Part shown: positions 18,846 to 64,000 of the stretch, in pieces
How the letters are laid out: the number at the start of each line of letters is the position of its first letter
Numbering within the stretch: the first letter of the stretch is position 1
Assembly (NCBI GenBank): GCA_964247055.1
Contig: OZ176057.1
Span: forward strand, 1,798,001 to 1,862,000
DNA length: 64,000 bases
Origin: Paragordius varius
Lineage: Eukaryota; Animalia; Nematomorpha
Direction: 5' to 3'
Translations under genes and position numbers: made by a program
The notes under the pieces: generated by a model
What the model saw: the letters and a program-made list of their open reading frames with translations, nothing else
Databases searched by the model: none
What the model was told of the DNA's origin: nothing

Positions 18846-18956
18846 CTAATCAATAAAATAATAGTTATATATTCAGCAAAGAGTATAGCCAGCAATTAAT
18901 AAAATTATATATAATTTTATTAAATTTCAAAAATGACATATAATTTAATGCTATAC

Positions 18957-19025
18957 CGAATGTTGGTTTTAAGTGTTTATTTTTTTTCTTTTTATGTTTT
19001 CTAGTCTTTGAAACAACTTTGCGCT
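18957..19025 (-). CDS. 69-nt phase-1/1 Lys-rich exon (E)RKVVSKTRKHKKKKNKHLKPTF; copies at 20124-20192 and 21256-21324
   Basis: TTTTTAG|AG...TTCG|GTATAG. Length and frame are kept in all three copies despite substitutions (copy 3 reads ERKDVSEIRKPRKKKNKHLKPPF). Confidence 0.55.
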
Positions 19026-21398: not shown

Positions 21399-21440
21399 CT
21401 GGGATACTTGTTGGTTTAGGACGTATAATATTTTTTAAAT
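21399..21440 (-). CDS. 42-nt phase-1/1 exon (D)LKNIIRPKPTSIP
   Basis: Strong splice sites TTTTCTTTTAG| and CAG|GTATGT. It is open and has the same K/P/T/I composition as the array peptides. Confidence 0.65.
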
Positions 21441-21497
21441 CTAAAAGAAAATAAATGTACAATAAATATTTGAATTTAAATTGGTTTTATTATATAC

Positions 21498-38125: not shown

Positions 38126-38176
38126 CTCCAGAAGTTGGAATTGGTGAATCTTCTGGTTTTAAGGCAAGTATAGAAA
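38126..38176 (-). CDS. 51-nt phase-1/1 exon (L)SILALKPEDSPIPTSG
   Basis: ATTTATAG| and GAG|GTAAATATATTTT. The donor resembles the 94-bp array intron, and the KP..PIPTS motif resembles the array peptide. Confidence 0.6.
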
Positions 38177-39431
38177 CTATAAATTGGAGAATGTATGTAG
38201 CAATTTAATAAATTAAATTTTAGTCTAGTTCAAATTAATATAAAAGATCAAAATAAGTTAAGAATTAAATTTATATATAAACCAGTAGTCAATAATCTTT
38301 ACTGTTTACTGAAAAAAACACCTATTTTGAGGGTATTTTTATTAAAATCTGTTTTAAACTCTGGTAATATAAAAATGTAAGGGTGGAAAAGGGATTGTTT
38401 TTGCGGCAAACCATTTGTCAAGCTATTTTTTGATATGAAATAGTTTAGTAATAGAGCGATATTAAGGTCTCTTTTATTGGTTTTGCTGTGTTAGACGGAT
38501 CATTGACATATATAAAATTCTTGCCATTTCGATCAATGTATTGTTATTTTAATTATTGGGCATTATGTGTATTAAAGGTTTTGGAGCCCCTAATACACTA
38601 TTACCCCTGGTCCCATCAGGCACAAAGAATGGCTTGCCATTGATTTCATCAGGGTGTGTATGGATTGGTTGGCAAGGTAAAATATACAGCTTTGAATTTA
38701 TAATAAGGCCACTTATCTTCAAGCGTCCTAATTCAATGTAACGGGACGTTAAAGGAAGATATCACGAAGAAATATTCGATTATCTATTTTTTATTCTTTT
38801 TATTGTATAAGGTCAATAAACTAGGATATTGGTTTTTCCATTACTTGTAGACGTCCACGAATTGTATTTTGTACGAATGCTTTTTTTCATGTGCTGTTGA
38901 ATTGATGTTGGGCATCATCCAATGCTTGCATTTTATCATATTTGCAATCATAATGCCCATAGCGCGCACCATCATTCACATTGGAAATAACGACTTTTAC
39001 ATTTAGAAAAACTTGTTCAATAGTGTACGTCACCTCATGTTTTACCAGAAAAGGACACCTCATAATTCTGGTGTAAAATGAGAAGCTTATGACGCAATTC
39101 TTTACAAGCAAAAACAAGAAGCAGTTTTTGTGTGTGTTTGTCGTTTAATGTCAATGAAAAAATTTGCGTGCAAAACTTGAGGTGTAAACATTGTTTGTAA
39201 AACGCGAGAATATCTTGGACTATACCTGGTATTTTGTACTATGTGGTAGAGTGGGAGACGGATATAAATTTCAGGGGTATAGAGAGTATAGGAAGACATA
39301 AAAATGAATATACTGTCTAGATTGTATATCTAAAGAATAGGCAATCCGAGGAGAGGAAAAAATCATTAAAAACATATTTATCTTCACGAGGCCGGTCTTG
39401 GAGGAGTTATATCAGTCGATATTATTTTTTT

Positions 39432-42400
39432 ATAAATATATTTACGTTTAGGAGGTGGCTTGGTTGATCGAGGAATAATGGTACTTAGTAGTGCGTTACT
39501 GGCACTCGCTGCATCTATTGTTTAAAAATATATTTATACGTTTAGGAGGCTGCGAGGTTGGTAGAGGTTTAATGGGACTTAGTATTACGGTACTGGCACT
39601 CGCTACGTCTATTGTTTAAAAATATATTTATACGTTTAGGAGGTTGCGAGGTTGGTACAGGTTTAATGGTACTTGGTATTACGGTACTGGCACTCGCTGC
39701 GTCTATTCTTTAAAAATATATTTATACGTTTAGGAGGTTGCGTGGTTGGTACAGGTTTAATGGTGTTTGGTATTACGGTACTGGCACTCGCTGCATCTAT
39801 TGTTTAAAAATATATTTATACGTTTAGGAGGTTGCGAGGTTGGTAGAGGTTTAATGGTACTTGGTATTACGGTACTGGCACTCGCTGCATCTATTGTTTT
39901 AAAATATATTTATACGTTTAGGAGGTGGCTTGGTTGATCGAGGTTTAATGGTACTTGGTATTACGGTACTGGCACTCGCTGCATCTATTGTTTAAAAATA
40001 TATTATTACGTTTAGGAGGTTGCGAGGTTGGTACAGGTTTAATGGTGTTTGGTATTACGGTACTGGCACTCGCTGCATCTATTGTTTAAAAATATATTTA
40101 TACGTTTAGGAGGTTGCGAGGTTGGTAGAGGTTTAATGGGACTTGGTATTACGGTACTGCCACTCGCTGCATCTATTGTTTAAAAATATATTATTACGTT
40201 TAGGAGGTTGCGAGGTTGGTACAGGTTTAATGGTACTTGGTATTACGGTACTGGCATTCGCTGCATCTATTGTTTAAAAATATATTATTACGTTTAGGAG
40301 GTTGCGAGGTTGGTACAGGTTTAATGGTGTTTGGTATTACGGTACTGGCACTCGCTGCATCTATTGTTTAAAAATATATTATTACGTTTAGGAGGTTGCG
40401 AGGTTGGTACAGGTTTAATGGTACTTGGTTTTACGGTACTGGCATTCGCTGCATCTATTGTTTAAAAATATATTTATACGTTTAGGAGGCTGCGAGGTTG
40501 GTAGAGGTTTAATGGGACTTGGTATTACGGTACTGCCACTCGCTGCATCTATTGTTTAAAAATATATTTATACGTTTAGGAGGCTGCGAGGTTGGTAGAG
40601 GTTTAATGGGACTTGGTATTACGGTACTGGCACTCGCTGCATCTATTGTTTAAAAATATATTTATACGTTTAGGAGGTGGCTTGGTTGATAGAGGAATAA
40701 TGGTACTTGGTGTTACGGTACTGGCACTCGCTACGTCTATTGTTTAAAAATATATTTATACGTTTAGGAGGTTGCGAGGTTGGTACAGGTTTTACGGTAC
40801 TTGGTGTTACGGTACTGGTACTCGCTGCATCTATTGTTTAAAAATATATTTATACGTTTAGGAGGTTGCGAGGTTGGTACAGGTTTAATGGTACTTGGTA
40901 TTACGGTACTGGCACTCGCTGCATCTATTGTTTAAAAATATATTATTACGTTTAGGAGGTTGCGAGGTTGGTACAGGTTTAATGGTGTTTGGTATTACGG
41001 TACTGGCACTCGCTGCATCTATTGTTTAAAAATATATTTATACGTTTAGGAGGTTGCGAGGTTGGTAGAGGTTTAATGGTACTTGGTATTACGGTACTGC
41101 CAGTCGCTGCATCTATTGTTTAAAAATATATTATTACGTTTAGGAGGTTGCGAGGTTGGTACAGGTTTAATGGTGTTTGGTATTACGGTACTGGCACTCG
41201 CTGCATCTATTCTTTAAAAATATATTTATACGTTTAGGAGGTTGCGAGGTTGGTACAGGTTTAATGGTACTTGGTATTACGGTACTGGCATTCGCTGCAT
41301 CTATTGTTTAAAAATATATTATTACGTTTAGGAGGTTGCGAGGTTGGTACAGGTTTAATGGTACTTGGTTTTACGGTACTGGCATTCGCTGCATCTATTG
41401 TTTAAAAATATATTTATACGTTTAGGAGGCTGCGAGGTTGGTAGAGGTTTAATGGGACTTGGTATTACGGTACTGCCACTCGCTGCATCTATTGTTTAAA
41501 AATATATTTATACGTTTAGGAGGCTGCGAGGTTGGTAGAGGTTTAATGGGACTTGGTATTACGGTACTGGCACTCGCTGCATCTATTGTTTAAAAATATA
41601 TTTATACGTTTAGGAGGTGGCTTGGTTGATAGAGGAATAATGGTACTTGGTGTTACGGTACTGGCACTCGCTACGTCTATTGTTTAAAAATATATTTATA
41701 CGTTTAGGAGGTTGCGAGGTTGGTACAGGTTTAATGGTACTTGGTATTACGGTACTGGCACTCGCTGCGTCTATTCTTTAAAAATATATTTATACGTTTA
41801 GGAGGTTGCGTGGTTGGTACAGGTTTAATGGTGTTTGGTATTACGGTACTGGCACTCGCTGCATCTATTGTTTAAAAATATATTTATACGTTTAGGAGGC
41901 TGCGAGGTTGGTAGAGGTTTAATGGGACTTGGTATTACGGTACTGCCACTCGCTGCATCTATTGTTTAAAAATATATTTATACGTTTAGGAGGCTGCGAG
42001 GTTGGTAGAGGTTTAATGGGACTTGGTATTACGGTACTGGCACTCGCTGCATCTATTGTTTAAAAATATATTTATACGTTTAGGAGGTGGCTTGGTTGAT
42101 AGAGGAATAATGGTACTTGGTGTTACGGTACTGGCACTCGCTACGTCTATTGTTTAAAAATATATTTATACGTTTAGGAGGTTGCGAGGTTGGTACAGGT
42201 TTTACGGTACTTGGTATTACGGTACTGCCACTCGCTGCATCTATTGTTTAAAAATATATTTATACGTTTAGGAGGTTGCGAGGTTGGTACAGGTTTAATG
42301 GTACTTGGTATTACGGTACTGGCACTCGCTGCATCTATTGTTTAAAAATATATTTTTACGTTTAGGAGGTTGCGAGGTTGGTACAGGTTTAATGGTGTTT

Positions 42401-45400
42401 GGTATTACGGTACTGGCACTCGCTGCATCTATTGTTTAAAAATATATTTATACGTTTAGGAGGTTGCGAGGTTGGTAGAGGTTTAATGGTACTTGGTATT
42501 ACGGTACTGCCAGTCGCTGCATCTATTGTTTAAAAATATATTTATACGTTTAGGAGGTGGCCTGGTTGATCGAGGAATAATGGTACTTGGTATTACGGTA
42601 CTGGCACTCGCTGCATCTATTGTTTAAAAATATATTATTACGTTTAGGAGGTTGCGAGGTTGGTACAGGTTTAATGGTACTTGGTATTACGGTACTGGCA
42701 TTCGCTGCATCTATTGTTTAAAAATATATTTATACGTTTAGGAGGCTGCGAGGTTGGTAGAGGTTTAATGGGACTTGGTATTACGGTACTGCCACTCGCT
42801 GCATCTATTGTTTAAAAATATATTTATACGTTTAGGAGGTTGCGAGGTTGGTACAGGTTTAATGGTACTTGGTATTACGGTACTGGCACTCGCTGCATCT
42901 ATTGTTTAAAAATATATTTATACGTTTAGGAGGTGGCTTGGTTGATAGAGGAATAATGGTACTTGGTGTTACGGTACTGGCACTCGCTACGTCTATTGTT
43001 TAAAAATATATTTATACGTTTAGGAGGTTGCGAGGTTGGTACAGGTTTAATGGGACTTGGTATTACGGTACTGCCACTCGCTGCATCTATTGTTTAAAAA
43101 TATATTTATACGTTTAGGAGGTTGCGAGGTTGGTACAGGTTTAATGGTACTTGGTATTACGGTACTGGCACTCGCTGCATCTATTGTTTAAAAATATATT
43201 TATACGTTTAGGAGGTGGCTTGGTTGATAGAGGAATAATGGTACTTGGTGTTACGGTACTGGTACTCGCTGCATCTATTGTTTAAAAATATATTTATACG
43301 TTTAGGAGGTTGCGAGGTTGGTACAGGTTTAATGGTACTTGGTATTACGGTACTGGCACTCGCTGCATCTATTGTTTAAAAATATATTATTACGTTTAGG
43401 AGGTTGCGAGGTTGGTACAGGTTTAATGGTGTTTGGTATTACGGTACTGGCACTCGCTGCATCTATTGTTTAAAAATATATTTATACGTTTAGGAGGTTG
43501 CGAGGTTGGTAGAGGTTTAATGGTACTTGGTATTACGGTACTGCCAGTCGCTGCATCTATTGTTTAAAAATATATTTATACGTTTAGGAGGTGGCCTGGT
43601 TGATCGAGGAATGGTACTTGGTATTACGGTACTGGCACTCGCTGCGTCTATTGTTTAAAAATATATTTATACGTTTAGGAGGTTGCGAGGTTGGTACAGG
43701 TTTAATGGTACTTGGTATTACGGTACTGGCATTCGCTGCATCTATTGTTTAAAAATATTATATTACGTTTAGGAGGTTGCGAGGTTGGTACAGGTTTAAT
43801 GGTGTTTGGTATTACGGTACTGGCACTCGCTGCATCTATTGTTTAAAAATATATTTATACGTTTAGGAGGCTGCGAGGTTGGTAGAGGTTTAATGGGACT
43901 TGGTATTACGGTACTGCCACTCGCTGCATCTATTGTTTAAAAATATATTTATACGTTTAGGAGGCTGCGAGGTTGGTAGAGGTTTAATGGGACTTGGTAT
44001 TACGGTACTGGCACTCCCTGCATCTATTGTTTAAAAATATATTTATACGTTTAGGAGGCTGCGAGGTTGGTAGAGGTTTAATGGGACTTGGTATTACGGT
44101 ACTGGCACTCGCTGCATCTATTGTTTAAAAATATATTATTACGTTTAGGAGGTTGCGAGGTTGGTACAGGTTTAATGGTACTTGGTATTACGGTACTGGC
44201 ATTCGCTGCATCTATTGTTTAAAAATATATTATTACGTTTAGGAGGTTGCGAGGTTGGTACAGGTTTAATGGTGTTTGGTATTACGGTACTGGCACTCGC
44301 TGCATCTATTGTTTAAAAATATATTATTACGTTTAGGAGGTTGCGAGGTTGGTACAGGTTTAATGGTACTTGGTATTACGGTACTGGCATTCGCTGCATC
44401 TATTGTTTAAAAATATATTATTACGTTTAGGAGGTTGCGAGGTTGGTACAGGTTTAATGGTGTTTGGTATTACGGTACTGGCACTCGCTGCATCTATTGT
44501 TTAAAAATATATTATTACGTTTAGGAGGTTGCGAGGTTGGTACAGGTTTAATGGTACTTGGTATTACGGTACTGGCATTCGCTGCATCTATTGTTTAAAA
44601 ATATATTTATACGTTTAGGAGGCTGCGAGGTTGGTAGAGGTTTAATGGGACTTGGTATTACGGTACTGCCACTCGCTGCATCTATTGTTTAAAAATATAT
44701 TTATACGTTTAGGAGGCTGCGAGGTTGGTAGAGGTTTAATGGGACTTGGTATTACGGTACTGGCACTCGCTGCATCTATTGTTTAAAAATATATTTATAC
44801 GTTTAGGAGGTGGCTTGGTTGATAGAGGAATAATGGTACTTGGTGTTACGGTACTGGCACTCGCTACGTCTATTGTTTAAAAATATATTTATACGTTTAG
44901 GAGGTTGCGAGGTTGGTACAGGTTTTACGGTACTTGGTATTACGGTACTGGCACTCGCTGCATCTATTGTTTAAAAATATATTATTACGTTTAGGAGGTT
45001 GCGAGGTTGGTAGAGGTTTAATGGGACTTGGTATTACGGTACTGCCACTCGCTGCATCTATTGTTTAAAAATATATTTATACGTTTAGGAGGTGGCTTGG
45101 TTGATCGAGGAATAATGGTACTTGGTATTACGGTACTGCCACTCGCTGCATCTATTGTTTAAAAATATATTTATACGTTTAGGAGGCTGCGAGGTTGGTA
45201 GAGGTTTAATGGGACTTGGTATTACGGTACTGGCACTCGCTGCATCTATTGTTTAAAAATATATTATTACGTTTAGGAGGTTGCGAGGTTGGTACAGGTT
45301 TAATGGTACTTGGTATTACGGTACTGGCATTCGCTGCATCTATTGTTTAAAAATATATTATTACGTTTAGGAGGTTGCGAGGTTGGTACAGGTTTAATGG

Positions 45401-48400
45401 TGTTTGGTATTACGGTACTGGCACTCGCTGCATCTATTGTTTAAAAATATATTATTACGTTTAGGAGGTTGCGAGGTTGGTACAGGTTTAATGGTACTTG
45501 GTATTACGGTACTGGCATTCGCTGCATCTATTGTTTAAAAATATATTTATACGTTTAGGAGGCTGCGAGGTTGGTAGAGGTTTAATGGGACTTGGTATTA
45601 CGGTACTGGCACTCGCTGCATCTATTGTTTAAAAATATATTTATACGTTTAGGAGGCTGCGAGGTTGGTAGAGGTTTAATGGGACTTGGTATTACGGTAC
45701 TGGCACTCGCTGCATCTATTGTTTAAAAATATATTATTACGTTTAGGAGGTTGCGAGGTTGGTACAGGTTTAATGGTACTTGGTATTACGGTACTGGCAT
45801 TCGCTGCATCTATTGTTTAAAAATATATTATTACGTTTAGGAGGTTGCGAGGTTGGTACAGGTTTAATGGTGTTTGGTATTACGGTACTGGCACTCGCTG
45901 CATCTATTGTTTAAAAATATATTATTACGTTTAGGAGGTTGCGAGGTTGGTACAGGTTTAATGGTACTTGGTATTACGGTACTGGCATTCGCTGCATCTA
46001 TTGTTTAAAAATATATTTATACGTTTAGGAGGCTGCGAGGTTGGTAGAGGTTTAATGGGACTTGGTATTACGGTACTGCCACTCGCTGCATCTATTGTTT
46101 AAAAATATATTTATACGTTTAGGAGGTTGCGAGGTTGGTACAGGTTTAATGGTACTTGGTATTACGGTACTGGCACTCGCTGCATCTATTGTTTAAAAAT
46201 ATATTTATACGTTTAGGAGGTGGCTTGGTTGATAGAGGAATAATGGTACTTGGTGTTACGGTACTGGCACTCGCTACGTCTATTGTTTAAAAATATATTT
46301 ATACGTTTAGGAGGTTGCGAGGTTGGTACAGGTTTAATGGGACTTGGTATTACGGTACTGCCACTCGCTGCATCTATTGTTTAAAAATATATTTATACGT
46401 TTAGGAGGTTGCGAGGTTGGTACAGGTTTAATGGTACTTGGTATTACGGTACTGGCACTCGCTGCATCTATTGTTTAAAAATATATTTATACGTTTAGGA
46501 GGTGGCTTGGTTGATAGAGGAATAATGGTACTTGGTGTTACGGTACTGGTACTCGCTGCATCTATTGTTTAAAAATATATTTATACGTTTAGGAGGTTGC
46601 GAGGTTGGTACAGGTTTAATGGTACTTGGTATTACGGTACTGGCACTCGCTGCATCTATTGTTTAAAAATATATTATTACGTTTAGGAGGTTGCGAGGTT
46701 GGTACAGGTTTAATGGTGTTTGGTATTACGGTACTGGCACTCGCTGCATCTATTGTTTAAAAATATATTTATACGTTTAGGAGGTTGCGAGGTTGGTAGA
46801 GGTTTAATGGTACTTGGTATTACGGTACTGCCAGTCGCTGCATCTATTGTTTAAAAATATATTTATACGTTTAGGAGGTGGCCTGGTTGATCGAGGAATG
46901 GTACTTGGTATTACGGTACTGGCACTCGCTGCGTCTATTGTTTAAAAATATATTTATACGTTTAGGAGGTTGCGAGGTTGGTACAGGTTTAATGGTACTT
47001 GGTATTACGGTACTGGCATTCGCTGCATCTATTGTTTAAAAATATTATATTACGTTTAGGAGGTTGCGAGGTTGGTACAGGTTTAATGGTGTTTGGTATT
47101 ACGGTACTGGCACTCGCTGCATCTATTGTTTAAAAATATATTTATACGTTTAGGAGGCTGCGAGGTTGGTAGAGGTTTAATGGGACTTGGTATTACGGTA
47201 CTGCCACTCGCTGCATCTATTGTTTAAAAATATATTTATACGTTTAGGAGGCTGCGAGGTTGGTAGAGGTTTAATGGGACTTGGTATTACGGTACTGGCA
47301 CTCGCTGCATCTATTGTTTAAAAATATATTTATACGTTTAGGAGGCTGCGAGGTTGGTAGAGGTTTAATGGGACTTGGTATTACGGTACTGGCACTCGCT
47401 GCATCTATTGTTTAAAAATATATTATTACGTTTAGGAGGTTGCGAGGTTGGTACAGGTTTAATGGTACTTGGTATTACGGTACTGGCATTCGCTGCATCT
47501 ATTGTTTAAAAATATATTATTACGTTTAGGAGGTTGCGAGGTTGGTACAGGTTTAATGGTGTTTGGTATTACGGTACTGGCACTCGCTGCATCTATTGTT
47601 TAAAAATATATTATTACGTTTAGGAGGTTGCGAGGTTGGTACAGGTTTAATGGTACTTGGTATTACGGTACTGGCATTCGCTGCATCTATTGTTTAAAAA
47701 TATATTATTACGTTTAGGAGGTTGCGAGGTTGGTACAGGTTTAATGGTGTTTGGTATTACGGTACTGGCACTCGCTGCATCTATTGTTTAAAAATATATT
47801 ATTACGTTTAGGAGGTTGCGAGGTTGGTACAGGTTTAATGGTACTTGGTATTACGGTACTGGCATTCGCTGCATCTATTGTTTAAAAATATATTTATACG
47901 TTTAGGAGGCTGCGAGGTTGGTAGAGGTTTAATGGGACTTGGTATTACGGTACTGCCACTCGCTGCATCTATTGTTTAAAAATATATTTATACGTTTAGG
48001 AGGCTGCGAGGTTGGTAGAGGTTTAATGGGACTTGGTATTACGGTACTGGCACTCGCTGCATCTATTGTTTAAAAATATATTTATACGTTTAGGAGGTGG
48101 CTTGGTTGATAGAGGAATAATGGTACTTGGTGTTACGGTACTGGCACTCGCTACGTCTATTGTTTAAAAATATATTTATACGTTTAGGAGGTTGCGAGGT
48201 TGGTACAGGTTTTACGGTACTTGGTATTACGGTACTGGCACTCGCTGCATCTATTGTTTAAAAATATATTATTACGTTTAGGAGGTTGCGAGGTTGGTAG
48301 AGGTTTAATGGGACTTGGTATTACGGTACTGCCACTCGCTGCATCTATTGTTTAAAAATATATTTATACGTTTAGGAGGTGGCTTGGTTGATCGAGGAAT

Positions 48401-51400
48401 AATGGTACTTGGTATTACGGTACTGCCACTCGCTGCATCTATTGTTTAAAAATATATTTATACGTTTAGGAGGCTGCGAGGTTGGTAGAGGTTTAATGGG
48501 ACTTGGTATTACGGTACTGGCACTCGCTGCATCTATTGTTTAAAAATATATTATTACGTTTAGGAGGTTGCGAGGTTGGTACAGGTTTAATGGTACTTGG
48601 TATTACGGTACTGGCATTCGCTGCATCTATTGTTTAAAAATATATTATTACGTTTAGGAGGTTGCGAGGTTGGTACAGGTTTAATGGTGTTTGGTATTAC
48701 GGTACTGGCACTCGCTGCATCTATTGTTTAAAAATATATTATTACGTTTAGGAGGTTGCGAGGTTGGTACAGGTTTAATGGTACTTGGTATTACGGTACT
48801 GGCATTCGCTGCATCTATTGTTTAAAAATATATTTATACGTTTAGGAGGCTGCGAGGTTGGTAGAGGTTTAATGGGACTTGGTATTACGGTACTGCCACT
48901 CGCTGCATCTATTGTTTAAAAATATATTTATACGTTTAGGAGGCTGCGAGGTTGGTAGAGGTTTAATGGGACTTGGTATTACGGTACTGGCACTCGCTGC
49001 ATCTATTGTTTAAAAATATATTTATACGTTTAGGAGGTGGCTTGGTTGATAGAGGAATAATGGTACTTGGTGTTACGGTACTGGCACTCGCTACGTCTAT
49101 TGTTTAAAAATATATTTATACGTTTAGGAGGTTGCGAGGTTGGTACAGGTTTTACGGTACTTGGTATTACGGTACTGCCACTCGCTGCATCTATTGTTTA
49201 AAAATATATTTATACGTTTAGGAGGTTGCGAGGTTGGTACAGGTTTAATGGTACTTGGTATTACGGTACTGGCACTCGCTGCATCTATTGTTTAAAAATA
49301 TATTATTACGTTTAGGAGGTTGCGAGGTTGGTACAGGTTTAATGGTGTTTGGTATTACGGTACTGGCACTCGCTGCATCTATTGTTTAAAAATATATTTA
49401 TACGTTTAGGAGGTTGCGAGGTTGGTAGAGGTTTAATGGTACTTGGTATTACGGTACTGCCAGTCGCTGCATCTATTGTTTAAAAATATATTTATACGTT
49501 TAGGAGGTGGCCTGGTTGATCGAGGAATAATGGTACTTGGTATTACGGTACTGGCACTCGCTGCATCTATTGTTTAAAAATATATTATTACGTTTAGGAG
49601 GTTGCGAGGTTGGTACAGGTTTAATGGTACTTGGTATTACGGTACTGGCATTCGCTGCATCTATTGTTTAAAAATATATTTATACGTTTAGGAGGCTGCG
49701 AGGTTGGTAGAGGTTTAATGGGACTTGGTATTACGGTACTGCCACTCGCTGCATCTATTGTTTAAAAATATATTTATACGTTTAGGAGGCTGCGGGGTTG
49801 GTAGAGGTTTAATGGGACTTGGTATTACGGTACTGGCACTCGCTGCATCTATTGTTTAAAAATATATTTATACGTTTAGGAGGTGGCTTGGTTGATAGAG
49901 GAATAATGGTACTTGGTGTTACGGTACTGGCACCCGCTACGTCTATTGTTTAAAAATATATTTATACGTTTAGGAGGTTGCGAGGTTGGTACAGGTTTTA
50001 CGGTACTTGGTATTACGGTACTGCCACTCGCTGCATCTATTGTTTAAAAATATATTTATACGTTTAGGAGGTTGCGAGGTTGGTACAGGTTTAATGGTAC
50101 TTGGTATTACGGTACTGGCACTCGCTGCATCTATTGTTTAAAAATATATTATTACGTTTAGGAGGTTGCGAGGTTGGTACAGGTTTAATGGTGTTTGGTA
50201 TTACGGTACTGGCACTCGCTGCATCTATTGTTTAAAAATATATTTATACGTTTAGGAGGTTGCGAGGTTGGTAGAGGTTTAATGGTACTTGGTATTACGG
50301 TACTGCCAGTCGCTGCATCTATTGTTTAAAAATATATTTATACGTTTAGGAGGTGGCCTGGTTGATCGAGGAATAATGGTACTTGGTATTACGGTACTGG
50401 CACTCGCTGCGTCTATTGTTTAAAAATATATTTATACGTTTAGGAGGTTGCGAGGTTGGTACAGGTTTAATGGTACTTGGTATTACGGTACTGGCATTCG
50501 CTGCATCTATTGTTTAAATATTATATTACGTTTAGGAGGTTGCGAGGTTGGTACAGGTTTAATGGTGTTTGGTATTACGGTACTGGCACTCGCTGCATCT
50601 ATTGTTTAAAAATATATTTATACGTTTAGGAGGCTGCGAGGTTGGTAGAGGTTTAATGGGACTTGGTATTACGGTACTGCCACTCGCTGCATCTATTGTT
50701 TAAAAATATATTTATACGTTTAGGAGGCTGCGAGGTTGGTAGAGGTTTAATGGGACTTGGTATTACGGTACTGCCACTCGCTGCATCTATTGTTTAAAAA
50801 TATATTTATACGTTTAGGAGGCTGCGAGGTTGGTAGAGGTTTAATGGGACTTGGTATTACGGTACTGGCACTCGCTGCATCTATTGTTTAAAAATATATT
50901 ATTACGTTTAGGAGGTTGCGAGGTTGGTACAGGTTTAATGGTACTTGGTATTACGGTACTGGCATTCGCTGCATCTATTGTTTAAAAATATATTATTACG
51001 TTTAGGAGGTTGCGAGGTTGGTACAGGTTTAATGGTGTTTGGTATTACGGTACTGGCACTCGCTGCATCTATTGTTTAAAAATATATTATTACGTTTAGG
51101 AGGTTGCGAGGTTGGTACAGGTTTAATGGTACTTGGTATTACGGTACTGGCATTCGCTGCATCTATTGTTTAAAAATATATTTATACGTTTAGGAGGCTG
51201 CGAGGTTGGTAGAGGTTTAATGGGACTTGGTATTACGGTACTGCCACTCGCTGCATCTATTGTTTAAAAATATATTTATACGTTTAGGAGGCTGCGAGGT
51301 TGGTAGAGGTTTAATGGGACTTGGTATTACGGTACTGGCACTCGCTGCATCTATTGTTTAAAAATATATTTATACGTTTAGAAGGTGGCTTGGTTGATAG

Positions 51401-54400
51401 AGGAATAATGGTACTTGGTGTTACGGTACTGGCACTCGCTACGTCTATTGTTTAAAAATATATTTATACGTTTAGGAGGTTGCGAGGTTGGTACAGGTTT
51501 TACGGTACTTGGTATTACGGTACTGCCACTCGCTGCATCTATTGTTTAAAAATATATTTATACGTTTAGGAGGTTGCGAGGTTGGTACAGGTTTAATGGT
51601 ACTTGGTATTACGGTACTGGCACTCGCTGCATCTATTGTTTAAAAATATATTATTACGTTTAGGAGGTTGCGAGGTTGGTACAGGTTTAATGGTGTTTGG
51701 TATTACGGTACTGGCACTCGCTGCATCTATTGTTTAAAAATATATTTATACGTTTAGGAGGTTGCGAGGTTGGTAGAGGTTTAATGGTACTTGGTATTAC
51801 GGTACTGCCAGTCGCTGCATCTATTGTTTAAAAATATATTATTACGTTTAGGAGGTTGCGAGGTTGGTACAGGTTTAATGGTGTTTGGTATTACGGTACT
51901 GGCACTCGCTGCATCTATTGTTTAAAAATATATTTATACGTTTAGGAGGCTGCGAGGTTGGTAGAGGTTTAATGGGACTTGGTATTACGGTACTGCCACT
52001 CGCTGCATCTATTGTTTAAAAATATATTTATACGTTTAGGAGTTTGCGAGGTTGGTAGAGGTTTAATGGGACTTGGTATTACGGTACTGGCACTCGCTGC
52101 ATCTATTGTTTAAAAATATATTTATACGTTTAGGAGGTGGCCTGGTTGATCGAGGAATAATGGTACTTGGTATTACGGTACTGGCACTCGCTGCGTCTAT
52201 TGTTTAAAAATATATTTATACGTTTAGGAGGTTGCGAGGTTGGTACAGGTTTAATGGTACTTGGTATTACGGTACTGGCATTCGCTGCATCTATTGTTTA
52301 AAAATATTATATTACGTTTAGGAGGTTGCGAGGTTGGTACAGGTTTAATGGTGTTTGGTATTACGGTACTGGCACTCGCTGCATCTATTGTTTATAAATA
52401 TATTTATACGTTTAGGAGGCTGCGAGGTTGGTAGAGGTTTAATGGGACTTGGTATTACGGTACTGCCACTCGCTGCATCTATTGTTTAAAAATATATTTA
52501 TACGTTTAGGAGGCTGCGAGGTTGGTAGAGGTTTAATGGGACTTGGTATTACTATACTGGCACTCGCTGCATCTATTGTTTAAAAATATATTATTACGTT
52601 TAGGAGGTTGCGAGGTTGGTACAGGTTTAATGGTACTTGGTATTACGGTACTGGCATTAGCTGCATCTATTGTTTAAAAATATATTATTACGTTTAGGAG
52701 GTTGCGAGGTTGGTACAGGTTTAATGGTGTTTGGTATTACGGTACTGGCACTCGCTGCATCTATTGTTTAAAAATATATTATTACGTTTAGGAGGTTGCG
52801 AGGTTGGTACAGGTTTAATGGTACTTGGTATTACGGTACTGGCATTCGCTGCATCTATTGTTTAAAAATATATTATTACGTTTAGGAGGTTGCGAGGTTG
52901 GTACAGGTTTAATGGTGTTTGGTATTACGGTACTGGCACTCGCTGCATCTATTGTTTAAAAAGATATTATTACGTTTAGGAGGTTGCGAGGTTGGTACAG
53001 GTTTAATGGTGTTTGGTATTACGGTACTGGCACTCGCTGCATCTATTGTTTAAAAATATATTTATACGTTTAGGAGGCTGCGAGGTTGGTACAGGTTTAA
53101 TGGTACTTGGTATTACGGTACTGGCACTCGCTGCATCTATTGTTTAAAAATATATTATTACGTTTAGGAGGTTGCGAGGTTGGTACAGGTTTAATGGTGT
53201 TTGGTATTACGGTACTGGCACTCGCTGCATCTATTGTTTAAAAATATATTTATACGTTTAGGAGGCTGCGAGGTTGGTAGAGGTTTAATGGGACTTGGTA
53301 TTACGGTACTGCCACTCGCTGCATCTATTGTTTAAAAATATATTTATACGTTTAGGAGGTGGCTTGGTTGATCGAGGAATAATGGTACTTGGTATTACGG
53401 TACTGCCACTCGCTGCATCTATTGTTTAAATATATTTATACGTTTAGGAGGCTGCGAGGTTGGTAGAGGTTTAATGGGACTTGGTATTACGGTACTGGCA
53501 CTCGCTGCATCTATTGTTTAAAAATATATTATTACGTTTAGGAGGTTGCGAGGTTGGTACAGGTTTAATGGTACTTGGTATTACGGTACTGGCATTCGCT
53601 GCATCTATTGTTTAAAAATATATTATTACGTTTAGGAGGTTGCGAGGTTGGTACAGGTTTAATGGTGTTTGGTATTACGGTACTGGCACTCGCTGCATCT
53701 ATTGTTTAAAAATATATTATTACGTTTAGGAGGTTGCGAGGTTGGTACAGGTTTAATGGTACTTGGTATTACGGTACTGGCATTCGCTGCATCTATTGTT
53801 TAAAAATATATTTATACGTTTAGGAGGCTGCGAGGTTGGTAGAGGTTTAATGGGACTTGGTATTACGGTACTGCCACTCGCTGCATCTATTGTTTAAAAA
53901 TATATTTATACGTTTAGGAGGCTGCGAGGTTGGTAGAGGTTTAATGGGACTTGGTATTACGGTACTGGCACTCGCTGCATCTATTGTTTAAAAATATATT
54001 TATACGTTTAGGAGGTGGCTTGGTTGATAGAGGAATAATGGTACTTGGTGTTACGGTACTGGCACTCGCTACGTCTATTGTTTAAAAATATATTTATACG
54101 TTTAGGAGGTTGCGAGGTTGGTACAGGTTTTACGGTACTTGGTATTACGGTACTGCCACTCGCTGCATCTATTGTTTAAAAATATATTTATACGTTTAGG
54201 AGGTTGCGAGGTTGGTACAGGTTTAATGGTACTTGGTATTACGGTACTGGCACTCGCTGCATCTATTGTTTAAAAATATATTATTACGTTTAGGAGGTTG
54301 CGAGGTTGGTACAGGTTTAATGGTGTTTGGTATTACGGTACTGGCACTCGCTGCATCTATTGTTTAAAAATATATTTATACGTTTAGGAGGTTGCGAGGT

Positions 54401-57400
54401 TGGTAGAGGTTTAATGGTACTTGGTATTACGGTACTGCCAGTCGCTGCATCTATTGTTTAAAAATATATTTATACGTTTAGGAGGTGGCCTGGTTGATCG
54501 AGGAATAATGGTACTTGGTATTACGGTACTGGCACTCGCTGCATCTATTGTTTAAAAATATATTATTACGTTTAGGAGGTTGCGAGGTTGGTACAGGTTT
54601 AATGGTACTTGGTATTACGGTACTGGCATTCGCTGCATCTATTGTTTAAAAATATATTTATACGTTTAGGAGGCTGCGAGGTTGGTAGAGGTTTAATGGG
54701 ACTTGGTATTACGGTACTGCCACTCGCTGCATCTATTGTTTAAAAATATATTTATACGTTTAGGAGGCTGCGAGGTTGGTAGAGGTTTAATGGGACTTGG
54801 TATTACGGTACTGGCACTCGCTGCATCTATTGTTTAAAAATATATTTATACGTTTAGGAGGTGGTTTGGTTGATAGAGGAATAATGGTACTTGGTGTTAC
54901 GGTACTGGCACTCGCTACGTCTATTGTTTAAAAATATATTTATACGTTTAGGAGGTTGCGAGGTTGGTACAGGTTTTACGGTACTTGGTATTACGGTACT
55001 GCCACTCGCTGCATCTATTGTTTAAAAATATATTTATACGTTTAGGAGGTTGCGAGGTTGGTACAGGTTTAATGGTACTTGGTATTACGGTACTGGCACT
55101 CGCTGCATCTATTGTTTAAAAATATATTATTACGTTTAGGAGGTTGCGAGGTTGGTACAGGTTTAATGGTACTTGGTATTACGGTACTGGCATTCGCTGC
55201 ATCTATTGTTTAAAAATATATTTATACGTTTAGGAGGCTGCGAGGTTGGTAGAGGTTTAATGGGACTTGGTATTACGGTACTGCCACTCGCTGCATCTAT
55301 TGTTTAAAAATATATTTATACGTTTAGGAGGCTGCGAGGTTGGTAGAGGTTTAATGGGACTTGGTATTACGGTACTGGCACTCGCTGCATCTATTGTTTA
55401 AAAATATATTATTACGTTTAGGAGGTTGCGAGGTTGGTACAGGTTTAATGGTACTTGGTATTACGGTACTGGCATTCGCTGCATCTATTGTTTAAAAATA
55501 TATTATTACGTTTAGGAGGTTGCGAGGTTGGTACAGGTTTAATGGTGTTTGGTATTACGGTACTGGCACTCGCTACATCTATTGTTTAAAAATATATTTA
55601 TACGTTTAGGAGGCTGCGAGGTTGGTAGAGGTTTAATGGGACTTGGTATTACGGTACTGCCACTCGCTGCATCTATTGTTTAAAAATATATTTATACGTT
55701 TAGGAGGTGGCTTGGTTGATCGAGGAATAATGGTACTTGGTATTACGGTACTGTCACTCGCTGCATCTATTGTTTAAAAATATATTTATACGTTTAGGAG
55801 GCTGCGAGGTTGGTAGAGGTTTAATGGGACTTGGTATTACGGTACTGGCACTCGCTGCATCTATTGTTTAAAAATATATTATTACGTTTAGGAGGTTGCG
55901 AGGTTGGTACAGGTTTAATGGTACTTGGTATTACGGTACTGGCATTCGCTGCATCTATTGTTTAAAAATATATTATTACGTTTAGGAGGTTGCGAGGTTG
56001 GTACAGGTTTAATGGTGTTTGGTATTACGGTACTGGCACTCGCTGCATCTATTGTTTAAAAATATATTATTACGTTTAGGAGGTTGCGAGGTTGGTACAG
56101 GTTTAATGGTACTTGGTATTACGGTACTGGCATTCGCTGCATCTATTGTTTAAAAATATATTTATACGTTTAGGAGGCTGCGAGGTTGGTAGAGGTTTAA
56201 TGGGACTTGGTATTACGGTACTGCCACTCGCTGCATCTATTGTTTAAAAATATATTTATACGTTTAGGAGGCTGCGAGGTTGGTAGAGGTTTAATGGGAC
56301 TTGGTATTACGGTACTGGCACTCGCTGCATCTATTGTTTAAAAATATATTTATACGTTTAGGAGGTGGCTTGGTTGATAGAGGAATAATGGTACTTGGTG
56401 TTACGGTACTGGCACTCGCTACGTCTATTGTTTAAAAATATATTTATACGTTTAGGAGGTTGCGAGGTTGGTACAGGTTTTACGGTACTTGGTATTACGG
56501 TACTGCCACTCGCTGCATCTATTGTTTAAAAATATATTTATACGTTTAGGAGGTTGCGAGGTTGGTACAGGTTTAATGGTACTTGGTATTACGGTACTGG
56601 CACTCGCTGCATCTATTGTTTAAAAATATATTATTACGTTTAGGAGGTTGCGAGGTTGGTACAGGTTTAATGGTGTTTGGTATTACGGTACTGGCACTCG
56701 CTGCATCTATTGTTTAAAAATATATTTATACGTTTAGGAGGTTGCGAGGTTGGTAGAGGTTTAATGGTACTTGGTATTACGGTACTGCCAGTCGCTGCAT
56801 CTATTGTTTAAAAATATATTTATACGTTTAGGAGGTAGCCTGGTTGATCGAGGAATAATGGTACTTGGTATTACGGTACTGGCACTCGCTGCGTCTATTG
56901 TTTAAAAATATATTTATACGTTTAGGAGGTTGCGAGGTTGGTACAGGTTTAATGGTACTTGGTATTACGGTACTGGCATTCGCTGCATCTATTGTTTAAA
57001 AATATTATATTACGTTTAGGAGGTTGCGAGGTTGGTACAGGTTTAATGGTGTTTGGTATTACGGTACTGGCACTCGCTGCATCTATTGTTTAAAAATATA
57101 TTTATACGTTTAGGAGGCTGCGAGGTTGGTACAGGTTTAATGGTACTTGGTATTACGGTACTGGCACTCGCTGCATCTATTGTTTAAAAATATATTATTA
57201 CGTTTAGGAGGTTGCGAGGTTGGTACAGGTTTAATGGTGTTTGGTATTACGGTACTGGCACTCGCTGCATCTATTGTTTAAAAATATATTTATACGTTTA
57301 GGAGGCTGCGAGGTTGGTAGAGGTTTAATGGGACTTGGTATTACGGTACTGCCACTCGCTGCATCTATTGTTTAAAAATATATTTATACGTTTAGGAGGT

Positions 57401-60400
57401 GGCTTGGTTGATCGAGGAATAATGGTACTTGGTATTACGGTACTGCCACTCGCTGCATCTATTGTTTAAAAATATATTTATACGTTTAGGAGGCTGCGAG
57501 GTTGGTAGAGGTTTAATGGGACTTGGTATTACGGTACTGGCACTCGCTGCATCTATTGTTTAAAAATATATTATTACGTTTAGGAGGTTGCGAGGTTGGT
57601 ACAGGTTTAATGGTACTTGGTATTACGGTACTGGCATTCGCTGCATCTATTGTTTAAAAATATATTATTACGTTTAGGAGGTTGCGAGGTTGGTACAGGT
57701 TTAATGGTGTTTGGTATTACGGTACTGGCACTCGCTACATCTATTGTTTAAAAATATATTATTACGTTTAGGAGGTTGCGAGGTTGGTACAGGTTTAATG
57801 GTACTTGGTATTACGGTACTGGCATTCGCTGCATCTATTGTTTAAAAATATATTTATACGTTTAGGAGGCTGCGAGGTTGGTAGAGGTTTAATGGGACTT
57901 GGTATTACGGTACTGCCACTCGCTGCATCTATTGTTTAAAAATATATTTATACGTTTAGGAGGCTGCGAGGTTGGTAGAGGTTTAATGGGACTTGGTATT
58001 ACGGTACTGGCACTCGCTGCATCTATTGTTTAAAAATATATTTATACGTTTAGGAGGTGGCTTGGTTGATAGAGGAATAATGGTACTTGGTGTTACGGTA
58101 CTGGCACTCGCTACGTCTATTGTTTAAAAATATATTTATACGTTTAGGAGGTTGCGAGGTTGGTACAGGTTTTACGGTACTTGGTATTACGGTACTGCCA
58201 CTCGCTGCATCTATTGTTTAAAAATATATTTATACGTTTAGGAGGTTGCGAGGTTGGTACAGGTTTAATGGTACTTGGTATTACGGTACTGGCACTCGCT
58301 GCATCTATTGTTTAAAAATATATTATTACGTTTAGGAGGTTGCGAGGTTGGTACAGGTTTAATGGTGTTTGGTATTACGGTACTGGCACTCGCTGCATCT
58401 ATTGTTTAAAAATATATTTATACGTTTAGGAGGTTGCGAGGTTGGTAGAGGTTTAATGGTACTTGGTATTACGGTACTGCCAGTCGCTGCATCTATTGTT
58501 TAAAAATATATTTATACGTTTAGGAGGTGGCCTGGTTGATCGAGGAATAATGGTACTTGGTATTACGGTACTGGCACTCGCTGCATCTATTGTTTAAAAA
58601 TATATTATTACGTTTAGGAGGTTGCGAGGTTGGTACAGGTTTAATGGTACTTGGTATTACGGTACTGGCATTCGCTGCATCTATTGTTTAAAAATATATT
58701 TATACGTTTAGGAGGCTGCGAGGTTGGTAGAGGTTTAATGGGACTTGGTATTACGGTACTGCCACTCGCTGCATCTATTGTTTAAAAATATATTTATACG
58801 TTTAGGAGGCTGCGAGGTTGGTAGAGGTTTAATGGGACTTGGTATTACGGTACTGGCACTCGCTGCATCTATTGTTTAAAAATATATTTATACGTTTAGG
58901 AGGTGGTTTGGTTGATAGAGGAATAATGGTACTTGGTGTTACGGTACTGGCACTCGCTACGTCTATTGTTTAAAAATATATTTATACGTTTAGGAGGTTG
59001 CGAGGTTGGTACAGGTTTTACGGTACTTGGTATTACGGTACTGCCACTCGCTGCATCTATTGTTTAAAAATATATTTATACGTTTAGGAGGTTGCGAGGT
59101 TGGTACAGGTTTAATGGTACTTGGTATTACGGTACTGGCACTCGCTGCATCTATTGTTTAAAAATATATTATTACGTTTAGGAGGTTGCGAGGTTGGTAC
59201 AGGTTTAATGGTGTTTGGTATTACGGTACTGGCACTCGCTGCATCTATTGTTTAAAAATATATTTATACGTTTAGGAGGTTGCGAGGTTGGTAGAGGTTT
59301 AATGGTACTTGGTATTACGGTACTGCCAGTCGCTGCATCTATTGTTTAAAAATATATTTATACGTTTAGGAGGTGGCCTGGTTGATCGAGGAATAATGAT
59401 ACTTGGTATTACGGTACTGGCACTCGCTGCGTCTATTGTTTAAAAATATATTTATACGTTTAGGAGGTTGCGAGGTTGGTACAGGTTTAATGGTACTTGG
59501 TATTACGGTACTGGCATTCGCTGCATCTATTGTTTAAAAATATTATATTACGTTTAGGAGGTTGCGAGGTTGGTACAGGTTTAATGGTGTTTGGTATTAC
59601 GGTACTGGCACTCGCTGCATCTATTGTTTAAAAATATATTATTACGTTTAGGAGGTTGCGAGGTTGGTACAGGTTTAATGGTACTTGGTATTACGGTACT
59701 GGCATTCGCTGCATCTATTGTTTAAAAATATATTTATACGTTTAGGAGGCTGCGAGGTTGGTAGAGGTTTAATGGGACTTGGTATTACGGTACTGCCACT
59801 CGCTGCATCTATTGTTTAAAAATATATTTATACGTTTAGGAGGCTGCGAGGTTGGTAGAGGTTTAATGGGACTTGGTATTACGGTACTGGCACTCGCTGC
59901 ATCTATTGTTTAAAAATATATTATTACGTTTAGGAGGTTGCGAGGTTGGTACAGGTTTAATGGTACTTGGTATTACGGTACTGGCATTCGCTGCATCTAT
60001 TGTTTAAAAATATATTATTACGTTTAGGAGGTTGCGAGGTTGGTACAGGTTTAATGGTGTTTGGTATTACGGTACTGGCACTCGCTGCATCTATTGTTTA
60101 AAAATATATTTATACGTTTAGGAGGCTGCGAGGTTGGTAGAGGTTTAATGGGACTTGGTATTACGGTACTGCCACTCGCTGCATCTATTGTTTAAAAATA
60201 TATTTATACGTTTAGGAGGTGGCTTGGTTGATCGAGGAATAATGGTACTTGGTATTACGGTACTGTCACTCGCTGCATCTATTGTTTAAAAATATATTTA
60301 TACGTTTAGGAGGCTGCGAGGTTGGTAGAGGTTTAATGGGACTTGGTATTACGGTACTGGCACTCGCTGCATCTATTGTTTAAAAATATATTATTACGTT

Positions 60401-63400
60401 TAGGAGGTTGCGAGGTTGGTACAGGTTTAATGGTACTTGGTATTACGGTACTGGCATTCGCTGCATCTATTGTTTAAAAATATATTATTACGTTTAGGAG
60501 GTTGCGAGGTTGGTACAGGTTTAATGGTGTTTGGTATTACGGTACTGGCACTCGCTGCATCTATTGTTTAAAAATATATTATTACGTTTAGGAGGTTGCG
60601 AGGTTGGTACAGGTTTAATGGTACTTGGTATTACGGTACTGGCATTCGCTGCATCTATTGTTTAAAAATATATTTATACGTTTAGGAGGCTGCGAGGTTG
60701 GTAGAGGTTTAATGGGACTTGGTATTACGGTACTGCCACTCGCTGCATCTATTGTTTAAAAATATATTTATACGTTTAGGAGGCTGCGAGGTTGGTAGAG
60801 GTTTAATGGGACTTGGTATTACGGTACTGGCACTCGCTGCATCTATTGTTTAAAAATATATTTATACGTTTAGGAGGTGGCTTGGTTGATAGAGGAATAA
60901 TGGTACTTGGTGTTACGGTACTGGCACTCGCTACGTCTATTGTTTAAAAATATATTTATACGTTTAGGAGGTTGCGAGGTTGGTACAGGTTTAATGGTGT
61001 TTGGTATTACGGTACTGGTACTCGCTGCATCTATTGTTTAAAAATATATTTATACGTTTAGGAGGTTGCGAGGTTGGTACAGGTTTTACGGTACTTGGTA
61101 TTACGGTACTGCCACTCGCTGCATCTATTGTTTAAAAATATATTTATACGTTTAGGAGGCTGCGAGGTTGGTAGAGGTTTAATGGTGTTTGGTATTACGG
61201 TACTGGCACTCGCTGCATCTATTGTTTAAAAATATATTATTACGTTTAGGAGGTTGCGAGGTTGGTACAGGTTTAATGGTACTTGGTATTACGGTACTGG
61301 CATTCGCTGCATCTATTGTTTAAAAATATATTTATACGTTTAGGAGGCTGCGAGGTTGGTAGAGGTTTAATGGGACTTGGTATTACGGTACTGCCACTCG
61401 CTGCATCTATTGTTTAAAAATATATTTATACGTTTAGGAGGCTGCGAGGTTGGTAGAGGTTTAATGGGACTTGGTATTACGGTACTGGCACTCGCTGCAT
61501 CTATTGTTTAAAAATATATTTATACGTTTAGGAGGTGGCTTGGTTGATAGAGGAATAATGGTACTTGGTGTTACGGTACTGGCACTCGCTACGTCTATTG
61601 TTTAAAAATATATTTATACGTTTAGGAGGTTGCGAGGTTGGTACAGGTTTTACGGTACTTGGTATTACGGTACTGCCACTCGCTGCATCTATTGTTTAAA
61701 AATATATTTATACGTTTAGGAGGTTGCGAGGTTGGTACAGGTTTAATGGTACTTGGTATTACGGTACTGGCACTCGCTGCATCTATTGTTTAAAAATATA
61801 TTATTACGTTTAGGAGGTTGCGAGGTTGGTACAGGTTTAATGGTGTTTGGTATTACGGTACTGGCACTCGCTGCATCTATTGTTTAAAAATATATTTATA
61901 CGTTTAGGAGGTTGCGAGGTTGGTAGAGGTTTAATGGTACTTGGTATTACGGTACTGCCAGTCGCTGCATCTATTGTTTAAAAATATATTTATACGTTTA
62001 GGAGGTGGCCTGGTTGATCGAGGAATAATGGTACTTGGTATTACGGTACTGGCACTCGCTGCGTCTATTGTTTAAAAATATATTTATACGTTTAGGAGGT
62101 TGCGAGGTTGGTACAGGTTTAATGGTACTTGGTATTACGGTACTGGCATTCGCTGCATCTATTGTTTAAAAATATTATATTACGTTTAGGAGGTTGCGAG
62201 GTTGGTACAGGTTTAATGGTGTTTGGTATTACGGTACTGGCACTCGCTGCATCTATTGTTTAAAAATATATTTATACGTTTAGGAGGCTGCGAGGTTGGT
62301 AGAGGTTTAATGGGACTTGGTATTACGGTACTGCCACTCGCTGCATCTATTGTTTAAAAATATATTTATACGTTTAGGAGGCTGCGAGGTTGGTAGAGGT
62401 TTAATGGGACTTGGTATTACGGTACTGGCACTCGCTGCATCTATTGTTTAAAAATATATTTATACGTTTAGGAGGCTGCGAGGTTGGTAGAGGTTTAATG
62501 GGACTTGGTATTACGGTACTGGCACTCGCTGCATCTATTGTTTAAAAATATATTATTACGTTTAGGAGGTTGCGAGGTTGGTACAGGTTTAATGGTACTT
62601 GGTATTACGGTACTGGCATTCGCTGCATCTATTGTTTAAAAATATATTATTACGTTTAGGAGGTTGCGAGGTTGGTACAGGTTTAATGCTGTTTGGTATT
62701 ACGGTACTGGCACTCGCTGCATCTATTGTTTAAAAATATATTATTACGTTTAGGAGGTTGCGAGGTTGGTACAGGTTTAATGGTACTTGGTATTACGGTA
62801 CTGGCATTCGCTGCATCTATTGTTTAAAAATATATTATTACGTTTAGGAGGTTGCGAGGTTGGTACAGGTTTAATGGTGTTTGGTATGGTACTGGCACTC
62901 GCTGCATCTATTGTTTAAAAATATATTATTACGTTTAGGAGGTTGCGAGGTTGGTACAGGTTTAATGGTACTTGGTATTACGGTACTGGCATTCGCTGCA
63001 TCTATTGTTTAAAAATATATTTATACGTTTAGGAGGCTGCGAGGTTGGTAGAGGTTTAATGGGACTTGGTATTACGGTACTGCCACTCGCTGCATCTATT
63101 GTTTAAAAATATATTTATACGTTTAGGAGGCTGCGAGGTTGGTAGAGGTTTAATGGGACTTGGTATTACGGTACTGGCACTCGCTGCATCTATTGTTTAA
63201 AAATATATTTATACGTTTAGGAGGTGGCTTGGTTGATAGAGGAATAATGGTACTTGGTGTTACGGTACTGGCACTCGCTACGTCTATTGTTTAAAAATAT
63301 ATTTATACGTTTAGGAGGTTGCGAGGTTGGTACAGGTTTTACGGTACTTGGTATTACGGTACTGCCACTCGCTGCATCTATTGTTTAAAAATATATTTAT

Positions 63401-64000
63401 ACGTTTAGGAGGTTGCGAGGTTGGTACAGGTTTAATGGTACTTGGTATTACGGTACTGGCACTCGCTGCATCTATTGTTTAAAAATATATTATTACGTTT
63501 AGGAGGTTGCGAGGTTGGTACAGGTTTAATGGTGTTTGGTATTACGGTACTGGTACTCGCTGCATCTATTGTTTAAAAATATATTTATACGTTTAGGAGG
63601 TGGCTTGGTTGATCGAGGAATAATGGTACTTGGTATTACGGTACTGCCACTCGCTGCATCTATTGTATAAAAATATATTTATACGTTTAGGAGGCTGCGA
63701 GGTTGGTAGAGGTTTAATGGGACTTGGTATTACGGTACTGGCACTCGCTGCATCTATTGTTTAAAAATATATTATTACGTTTAGGAGGTTGCGAGGTTGG
63801 TACAGGTTTAATGGTACTTGGTATTACGGTACTGGCATTCGCTGCATCTATTGTTTAAAAATATATTATTACGTTTAGGAGGTTGCGAGGTTGGTACAGG
63901 TTTAATGGTGTTTGGTATTACGGTACTGGCACTCGCTGCATCTATTGTTTAAAAATATATTTATACGTTTAGGAGGTTGCGAGGTTGGTAGAGGTTTAAT
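39432..64000. repeat. 94-bp tandem array, ~261 units, runs off the window end
   Basis: The period is 94 bp (e.g. TTTAGG at 39541 and 39635). Units are near-identical, with a small set of recurring variants. Confidence 0.98.
39446..64000 (-). CDS. Mucin-like PTS-rich coding array: 261 complete 69-nt exons separated by 25-nt GT..AG introns, consensus HAASASTVIPSTIKPVPTSQPPK
   Basis: The minus-strand unit is GTATAAATATATTTTTAAACAATAG (or GTAATA...; 12% GC) plus a 69-nt open exon (48% GC). All variants examined are synonymous or missense. The three exon indels are 3 nt and the two intron indels are 2 nt. Confidence 0.75.

Follow-up and report, generated by a model that had tools for sequence, protein, structure and literature searches.

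A 94-nt tandem array in Paragordius varius with the anatomy of a repeated exon and micro-intron

Results

Exon-like and intron-like segments alternate along the array

We analyzed a stretch of 64,000 nucleotides (nt) of genomic DNA from the nematomorph Paragordius varius (assembly GCA_964247055.1, contig OZ176057.1, positions 1,798,001 to 1,862,000), hereafter referred to as the window, with all positions counted from its first letter. The region 39429-64000 is occupied by one 94-nt tandem array only, which runs off the window edge at 64000 and for which Tandem Repeats Finder reported a period of 94, 261.6 copies, 93% matches and 0% indels. Its guanine-plus-cytosine (GC) content is 39%, compared to ~27% in the flank, and the plus strand shows a strong excess of G over C. 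A preliminary description, made from the letters alone, had proposed that the minus strand of this array is a gene with one exon per protein repeat, encoding a mucin-like protein.

The array was segmented on the minus strand by its own splice-like anchors. This replaced a fixed 94-nt register, which drifts along the array owing to five length-variant units. Segmentation yielded 261 complete units, made up of 261 exon-like segments (258 of 69 nt and three of 66 nt) and 261 intron-like segments (259 of 25 nt and two of 23 nt), and the two types alternate without exception. Every one of the short segments starts with GT and ends with AG (261/261). The GC content differs sharply between the two parts, with 48% in the 69-mer and 12% in the 25-mer. 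Among the intron-like segments, 166 copies have the form GTATAAATATATTTTTAAACAATAG and 79 copies the form GTAATAAT..., so that the two commonest forms account for 245/261 copies; nine rarer forms make up the remainder. The genomic repeat unit is therefore a whole symmetric (phase 1-1) exon-like segment together with one intron-like segment. Typical examples on the minus strand are the 69-nt, 23-codon, phase 1-1 segment at 39540-39608 and the adjoining AT-rich 25-nt segment GTATAAATATATTTTTAAACAATAG at 39515-39539.

The first coordinates given in the preliminary description (exon 39446-39514, intron 39515-39539, exon 39540-39608) were recovered exactly, and its count of 261 complete exons and about 6,000 amino acids (aa) agrees with our 261 segments and 5,999 codons. 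Its exact division of each unit into 69 and 25 nt applies to most units but not to the five length variants. All of these lie on the minus strand like the rest of the array. In the 66-nt segment at 62842-62907 a GTA codon is deleted, and in those at 46869-46934 and 43582-43647 one ATT of ATTATT is lost, the frame being kept in each case. The 23-nt intron-like segments (53419-53441 and 50507-50529) have TTTTT shortened to TTT.

At its lower edge, the array ends with an exon-like unit at 39446-39514 (HAASASNALLSTIIPRSTKPPPK), which is the last and most diverged one and nevertheless retains 69 nt and an open frame. Next to it, at 39429-39445, lie the initial 17 nt of an intron-like segment (GTAAATATATTTAT...), with an intact GT donor at 39445; no matching acceptor was found 25 nt past this donor. 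At the other edge, the top 34 nt of the window (63967-64000) represent a truncated 262nd exon-like segment, with the first donor at minus-strand index 34, in agreement with the earlier statement that the array continues past the edge.

The joined exon-like segments have one open frame

Joining the exon-like segments results in 18,000 nt with one frame open for 5,999 codons without a stop. No frame stays open through the unspliced array, the longest stop-free stretch being 55 aa. According to the preliminary description, open reading frame (ORF) finders miss the array because 94 is not a multiple of 3. This contributes, but stop codons within the 25-mers are also responsible. The consensus 23-aa unit, HAASASTVIPSTIKPVPTSQPPK, is a tryptic peptide of 23 residues and occurs in 35 distinct peptide variants. 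Proline, serine and threonine together make up 51% of the residues (P 22.9%, S 15.5%, T 12.4%), with a further 27% of Ile/Val/Ala and 9% of Lys. The tandem Pro/Thr/Ser-rich repeats on which the name "mucin-like" was based are thus confirmed. The name itself describes the composition, and a structural or adhesive proline-rich protein is equally possible. A gene on the plus strand was also considered and rejected, as that strand has no GT..AG decoding and its ORFs do not exceed 51 aa. A Pfam search of the array returned no match.

Changes between units leave splice-like sites and frame intact

We compared the units with each other to see which changes they had accumulated. All 49 distinct substitutions spare the splice dinucleotides, and no stop codon remains from any of them. 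The sole change that would make a TAG always occurs together with a neighboring change, which gives AAG instead. About 2.8 disruptive substitutions were expected, and the probability of observing none is ~0.05, or ~0.25 when only the 23 rare variants are counted. Length changes follow the same division: those in exon-like segments are all of 3 nt (two independent losses), whereas both of those in intron-like segments are of 2 nt, and no 1-nt indel was found in the 24.5 kb of array. The GTA loss is a clean codon deletion. We estimate the neutral probability of substitutions and indels combined at ~0.005-0.05. Sites with common variants were found at 19/69 exon positions and 2/25 intron positions, a marginal difference (Fisher P = 0.05).

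Read depth suggests that the array is mostly one locus

Four public runs, X1 and X2 among them, contain 36-80% of the sampled array words. The region 38400-40400 of the window was examined in runs X1, X2, X5 and X6, all of which look like DNA libraries. In X1, depth is flat at ~489 across the 1 kb of flank, and in X2 two haplotypes of equal depth are present, with a flank difference of 4-5%. From the ratio of array to flank depth we calculated ~640 units per genome in X1 and ~360 in X2, a range of ~350-650 that is to be read as a rough figure, as depths were summed over contigs. The result suggests that the array is mostly one locus rather than a genome-wide satellite, and the number of units may differ between the two sequenced individuals. 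By this estimate, the 261.6 copies in the window are a large part of the total. Loose ends of the read contigs contain diverged unit variants that are absent from the window (for example, one with ...CCTAAAG followed by GTA); they share the AT-rich 25-mer and are read in the same frame. No skips of 25 nt were detected in the examined runs, and hence no spliced or retro-copied form in the DNA.

The two haplotypes of X2 show seven differences in 39208-39306 and none in 39307-39469, the part that adjoins the array. Heterozygosity of the non-coding flank DNA (38400-39400) is very high. Runs X5 and X6, which carry two other organism labels, contain the identical flank sequence at 3-10x depth, plus the array. 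This could be due to library carry-over, a host-parasite sample or mislabeling. In addition, at two points in the contigs of X5, array units run into unrelated sequence, a hint of one further small locus.

Exon candidates on the same strand flank the array

The flank was scanned for segments bounded by a pyrimidine tract with YAG and by a strong donor. On the minus strand this returned 15 candidates, 11 of them with a length divisible by three and 10 open in phase 1, compared to only 1/9 open in phase 1 on the plus strand.

One candidate is a putative downstream phase-1 exon of 27 or 51 nt (..LKPEDSPIPTSG) at 38126-38176 on the minus strand, 1.3 kb downstream of the array. The segment 38176-38126 aligns to the 3' half of the array exon with a 3-nt gap and then continues with the same GTAAATATATTT intron start as in the array. 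It resembles a diverged relative of that half of the array exon, and its use as an exon is presumed.

Further away, at 24176-29021 on the minus strand, the scan identified duplicated phase-1 mini-exon modules with strong splice-like sites. They are spaced by ~957 nt and ~3.7 kb and have two phase-1 mini-exons each, of 39 nt and of 30-36 nt, with predicted peptides DNPIRFSLKIPV, EFGTTTRPTF and ESGTTIRTF. Candidates lie at 28915-28886, 28793-28764, 27252-27226, 25282-25244, 25178-25143, 24325-24287 and 24208-24176, and one additional copy (29021-28983) has GG in place of the acceptor AG. Overall, flank mini-exon candidates are 27-39 nt long. Acceptors in the 24-29 kb region read tttattttag and donors gtaagt or gtgagt. 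Paralogous modules diverge by 16-19% in their exons and by 6-14% in their introns, with exon gaps of 3 or 6 columns.

A second array with a 133-bp unit is located at 15744-17103, also on the minus strand. It contains 10 exon-like segments of 63 nt each (DWKPKTTHITTRQPPRPTAN type), which are phase 1-1 and rich in Pro and Thr, separated by intron-like segments of 70, 76, 79 and 85 nt. The donor of this array (GTTTGC or GTTTAC) is a weak one, and the last acceptor, at 15807, reads AT and is thus broken. No phase-1 exon for a signal peptide was found in the flank. The flank candidates could belong to the same transcription unit as the array.

Discussion

A spliced gene segment or a young satellite

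We give about an even chance to the array being a real segment of a spliced gene. That its unit descends from a real exon with its intron flanks is almost certain. Besides the anatomy itself, we observed intact sites, exon length changes that keep the frame and exon-like neighbors on the same strand. A gene segment is favored by such sites and such a pattern of length changes, by the single-locus copy number and by neighbors that share strand and phase.

Several results weigh against this reading. The bare decoding of the 94-mer is not improbable, because 35-60% of random or shuffled 94-mers can be decoded likewise (that is, a GT..AG segment of 20-30 nt can be removed to leave a remainder of 3n nt with an open frame) and because an antisense frame of the joined exons is likewise free of stops. 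Only 4 of the 207 possible single changes in the consensus exon create a stop; for this reason, and given the open antisense frame, we dropped the stop count as coding evidence. What is beyond chance is how sharply the composition splits, together with the intact sites and the way in which lengths change.

The substitutions themselves look neutral. Only 7 of the 40 distinct exon variants are synonymous, compared to 26% expected; codon position 2 is the most variable one in the array exons; and the observed replacements have the same mean BLOSUM score as random ones. Tests of synonymous versus non-synonymous change, codon position and BLOSUM score gave no coding signal in any of the six frames, the other five being no different from the proposed one. 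One of the 3-nt exon losses could be explained by simple slippage in ATTATT alone. Moreover, the array is very young, with 52 distinct 94-mers among the 256 regular units and 31 occurrences of the commonest form. Selection had little time to act, and a neutral array of such an age would look readable too.

Neither RNA nor protein data yielded a product. Five presumed RNA runs with the same species label hold 0.00 of the sampled array words, the presumed RNA samples available being few. Because hundreds of repeats in one transcript would raise the number of its words many-fold, the locus was effectively silent in those samples. No sign of splicing, for which the preliminary description had proposed junction reads as a check, came from these runs or, as 25-nt skips, from the DNA-like ones. 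A 41-aa junction-spanning peptide had no candidate among proteins of 22-70 aa, and an unspliced ORF containing one whole exon had 0 HMMER matches among 1.84 billion representative proteins. The proposal of a gene with one exon per repeat is partly supported: it is right on the anatomy and the flank context is compatible with it, whereas the RNA and protein searches found no transcript or product.

The ends of the locus add to these difficulties. Its 5' end, and any signal peptide with it, lies beyond position 64000. At the 3' side we considered a terminal exon at 39329-39271, preceded by a 116-nt intron that has a good pyrimidine tract. It was discarded for want of support: four differences of the second haplotype fall inside it, and these, worked out by hand, are mostly amino-acid-changing.

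A serious possibility, if short of an even chance, is that the array is a young silent satellite, formed from the exon and neighboring intron pieces of a mucin-like mini-exon gene, which is unused and too young to have decayed. The neutral substitution pattern, the many identical 94-mers and higher-order repeat blocks, the presumed RNA runs devoid of array words and the lack of protein matches all speak for it, as does the DNA around the array, which abounds in repeats and remnants of transposons. The array consists of ~10 unit types arranged head-to-tail in irregular higher-order blocks, as in satellites, whereas many loci or a very high copy number were not found. A silent satellite would moreover have needed some luck to show no disruptive change among 49 substitutions (P ~0.05-0.25) and to have exon indels that are all of 3 nt when intron indels are of 2 nt. 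The mostly single-locus array, in line with exon candidates of the same strand and phase, also speaks against it, as do its units, each of them a whole symmetric exon with a splice site at either end.

It is improbable that the array is an ordinary non-coding satellite, without origin from a gene and with a coincidental exon/intron reading. The decodability of random 94-mers and the open antisense frame are compatible with such a coincidence, and so are an Rfam search of the array in which no family matched and a predicted RNA fold of the unit no better than that of shuffled sequence (z = -0.49). However, the boundaries of the 48% and 12% GC parts coincide with the GT and AG, and the real unit has only two decodings, just one of which takes out the AT-rich part. 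Coincidence would also have to account for a peptide that is Pro/Ser/Thr-rich like the neighboring exon candidates, for an exon candidate 1.3 kb away that is partly homologous and whose intron starts in the same way, and for a second array that shares design, strand and phase.

Least probable of all, and hardly to be expected, is an array that a larger minus-strand gene transcribes only as non-coding RNA or within a long intron, its units being skipped: downstream exon candidates on the same strand would fit, but the spliceosome would have to ignore 261 intact exon/intron units with both splice sites, and no RNA of any kind was found in the presumed RNA runs.

Proposed origin and product

For the reading as a spliced gene segment, we propose that the array would be a recently expanded run of a frame-neutral 69-nt exon and a 25-nt spliceosomal micro-intron, within a minus-strand locus built of small symmetric exons. 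It probably originated by a tandem duplication whose breakpoints lay within both flanking introns, which would have created a chimeric 25-nt intron. Unequal crossing-over would then have multiplied the ~10 unit types and shuffled them into irregular higher-order blocks. If the array is transcribed, each 25-mer would be removed by intron definition, with a predicted exon-exon junction of CCTCCTAAAC-ATGCAGCGAG and an mRNA of at least 18 kb. The predicted product is a repeat protein of at least 6,000 aa, composed of 23-aa units with 51% Pro/Ser/Thr. Given transcription and splicing, both of which we infer, as we do secretion and glycosylation, this product would probably be secreted and O-glycosylated.

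A far-reaching version of this proposal, to which we assign a rather low likelihood, is a single minus-strand transcription unit of more than 64 kb, whose mRNA would join several hundred 69-nt exons across 25-nt introns (261 of them in the window) and encode a length-variable, secreted, Pro/Ser/Thr-rich protein of the parasite. To our knowledge, such a unit, if true, would exceed titin in exon count and have the highest intron density known, and annotation would hide it by masking the array as a satellite.

Comparison with known repeat genes

The closest parallels in design are SmPoMuc of Schistosoma mansoni and the spider silk gene Flag. In SmPoMuc, a 27-bp exon lies in a genomic repeat of ~1 kb that is present in up to ~20 copies, with intronic parts that are >94% identical (PMC2576457). 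The comparison with SmPoMuc made in the preliminary description is factually right according to this source. Both have one small symmetric exon per protein repeat, tandemly repeated together with the flanking intron, and like the secreted Ser/Thr/Pro-rich parasite product SmPoMuc, the array peptide is rich in Pro/Ser/Thr. Unlike SmPoMuc, for which transcripts were shown, the array has a 69-bp exon, a 94-bp unit, a 25-nt intron and at least 261 copies, and is known from DNA alone. No sequence similarity between the array and SmPoMuc was found.

Repeated exon/intron units with near-identical introns are also described for the silk gene Flag of Nephila, and for MaSp2 of Argiope, by Hayashi and Lewis 2000, as cited in PMC3563967. 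Introns more homogeneous than the exons are reported for both Flag and SmPoMuc, as in the array (here variable at 2/25 versus 19/69 sites, a marginal difference). What sets the array apart from both is its scale, with at least 261 units, together with the 94-nt unit size and the 25-nt intron. Flag consists of roughly a dozen large exons with kilobase-sized introns and encodes a silk without a Pro/Ser/Thr repeat, and its expression is proven.

The micro-exon genes (MEGs) of schistosomes are chains of symmetric 3n exons that are invisible to ORF finders. The array flank, with its exon candidates of 27-39 nt, is MEG-like. The array itself falls outside this class, as MEGs have most of their coding sequence in symmetric exons of about 36 nt or less and the array exon measures 69 nt. 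Also unlike MEGs, it repeats one exon hundreds of times instead of chaining different ones, and its introns are far shorter. Titin PEVK is composed of >100 small symmetric exons, each encoding one proline-rich repeat, that arose from tandem duplication of exon and intron. In contrast to the array, PEVK introns are of ordinary size, its units are old and diverged, and both expression and alternative splicing are proven.

Introns of ~25 nt are the rule in Paramecium. In Dicyema japonicum, the mean intron length is 38 bp (PMC6736024). The intron-like segments of the array resemble these in being ~25 nt long, AT-rich and bounded by GT..AG, with removal presumably by intron definition. Whereas short introns occur throughout these compact genomes, the array is surrounded by repeat-rich DNA. 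We know of no earlier description of identical micro-introns in a run of hundreds.

If the array is spliced, it would take to an extreme the making of a repeat protein through joint duplication of exon and intron, and hundreds of identical 25-nt introns per transcript would provide a natural test for the limits of intron-definition splicing. It would likewise mean that whole genes can be lost from annotation when tandem repeats are masked first, which would be relevant to any genome with micro-introns, and it would point to a length-variable surface or secreted glycoprotein in the parasite. If it is silent, the array would illustrate clearly how a satellite arises from a whole exon/intron module.

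Other repeats in the window

Several further repeats were observed outside the array. A 1,168-bp unit occurs three times in 18655-21470, with copies that are 90-100% identical, and in each copy a 21-nt phase-1 exon candidate (YPGKSQ) recurs on the minus strand. The motif TTTTTCAAGCAAACACAACAT forms arrays of 21-bp period at 5508-5782, 6644-6836 and 17340-17408, including opposite orientations ~1 kb apart. An ORF on the minus strand (4184-4798) showed a weak match to the reverse transcriptase domain RVT_1 (E = 3e-4), below the curated cut-off, and is regarded as a retroelement remnant. Finally, a GC-rich 24-nt segment on the minus strand is found twice, at 151-174 and 9230-9253 (PLFTRSP and PLFTRFP), ~9 kb apart, flanked by ttaatttag and gtaaaatg; the pair could represent a duplicated mini-exon or belong to a dispersed repeat.

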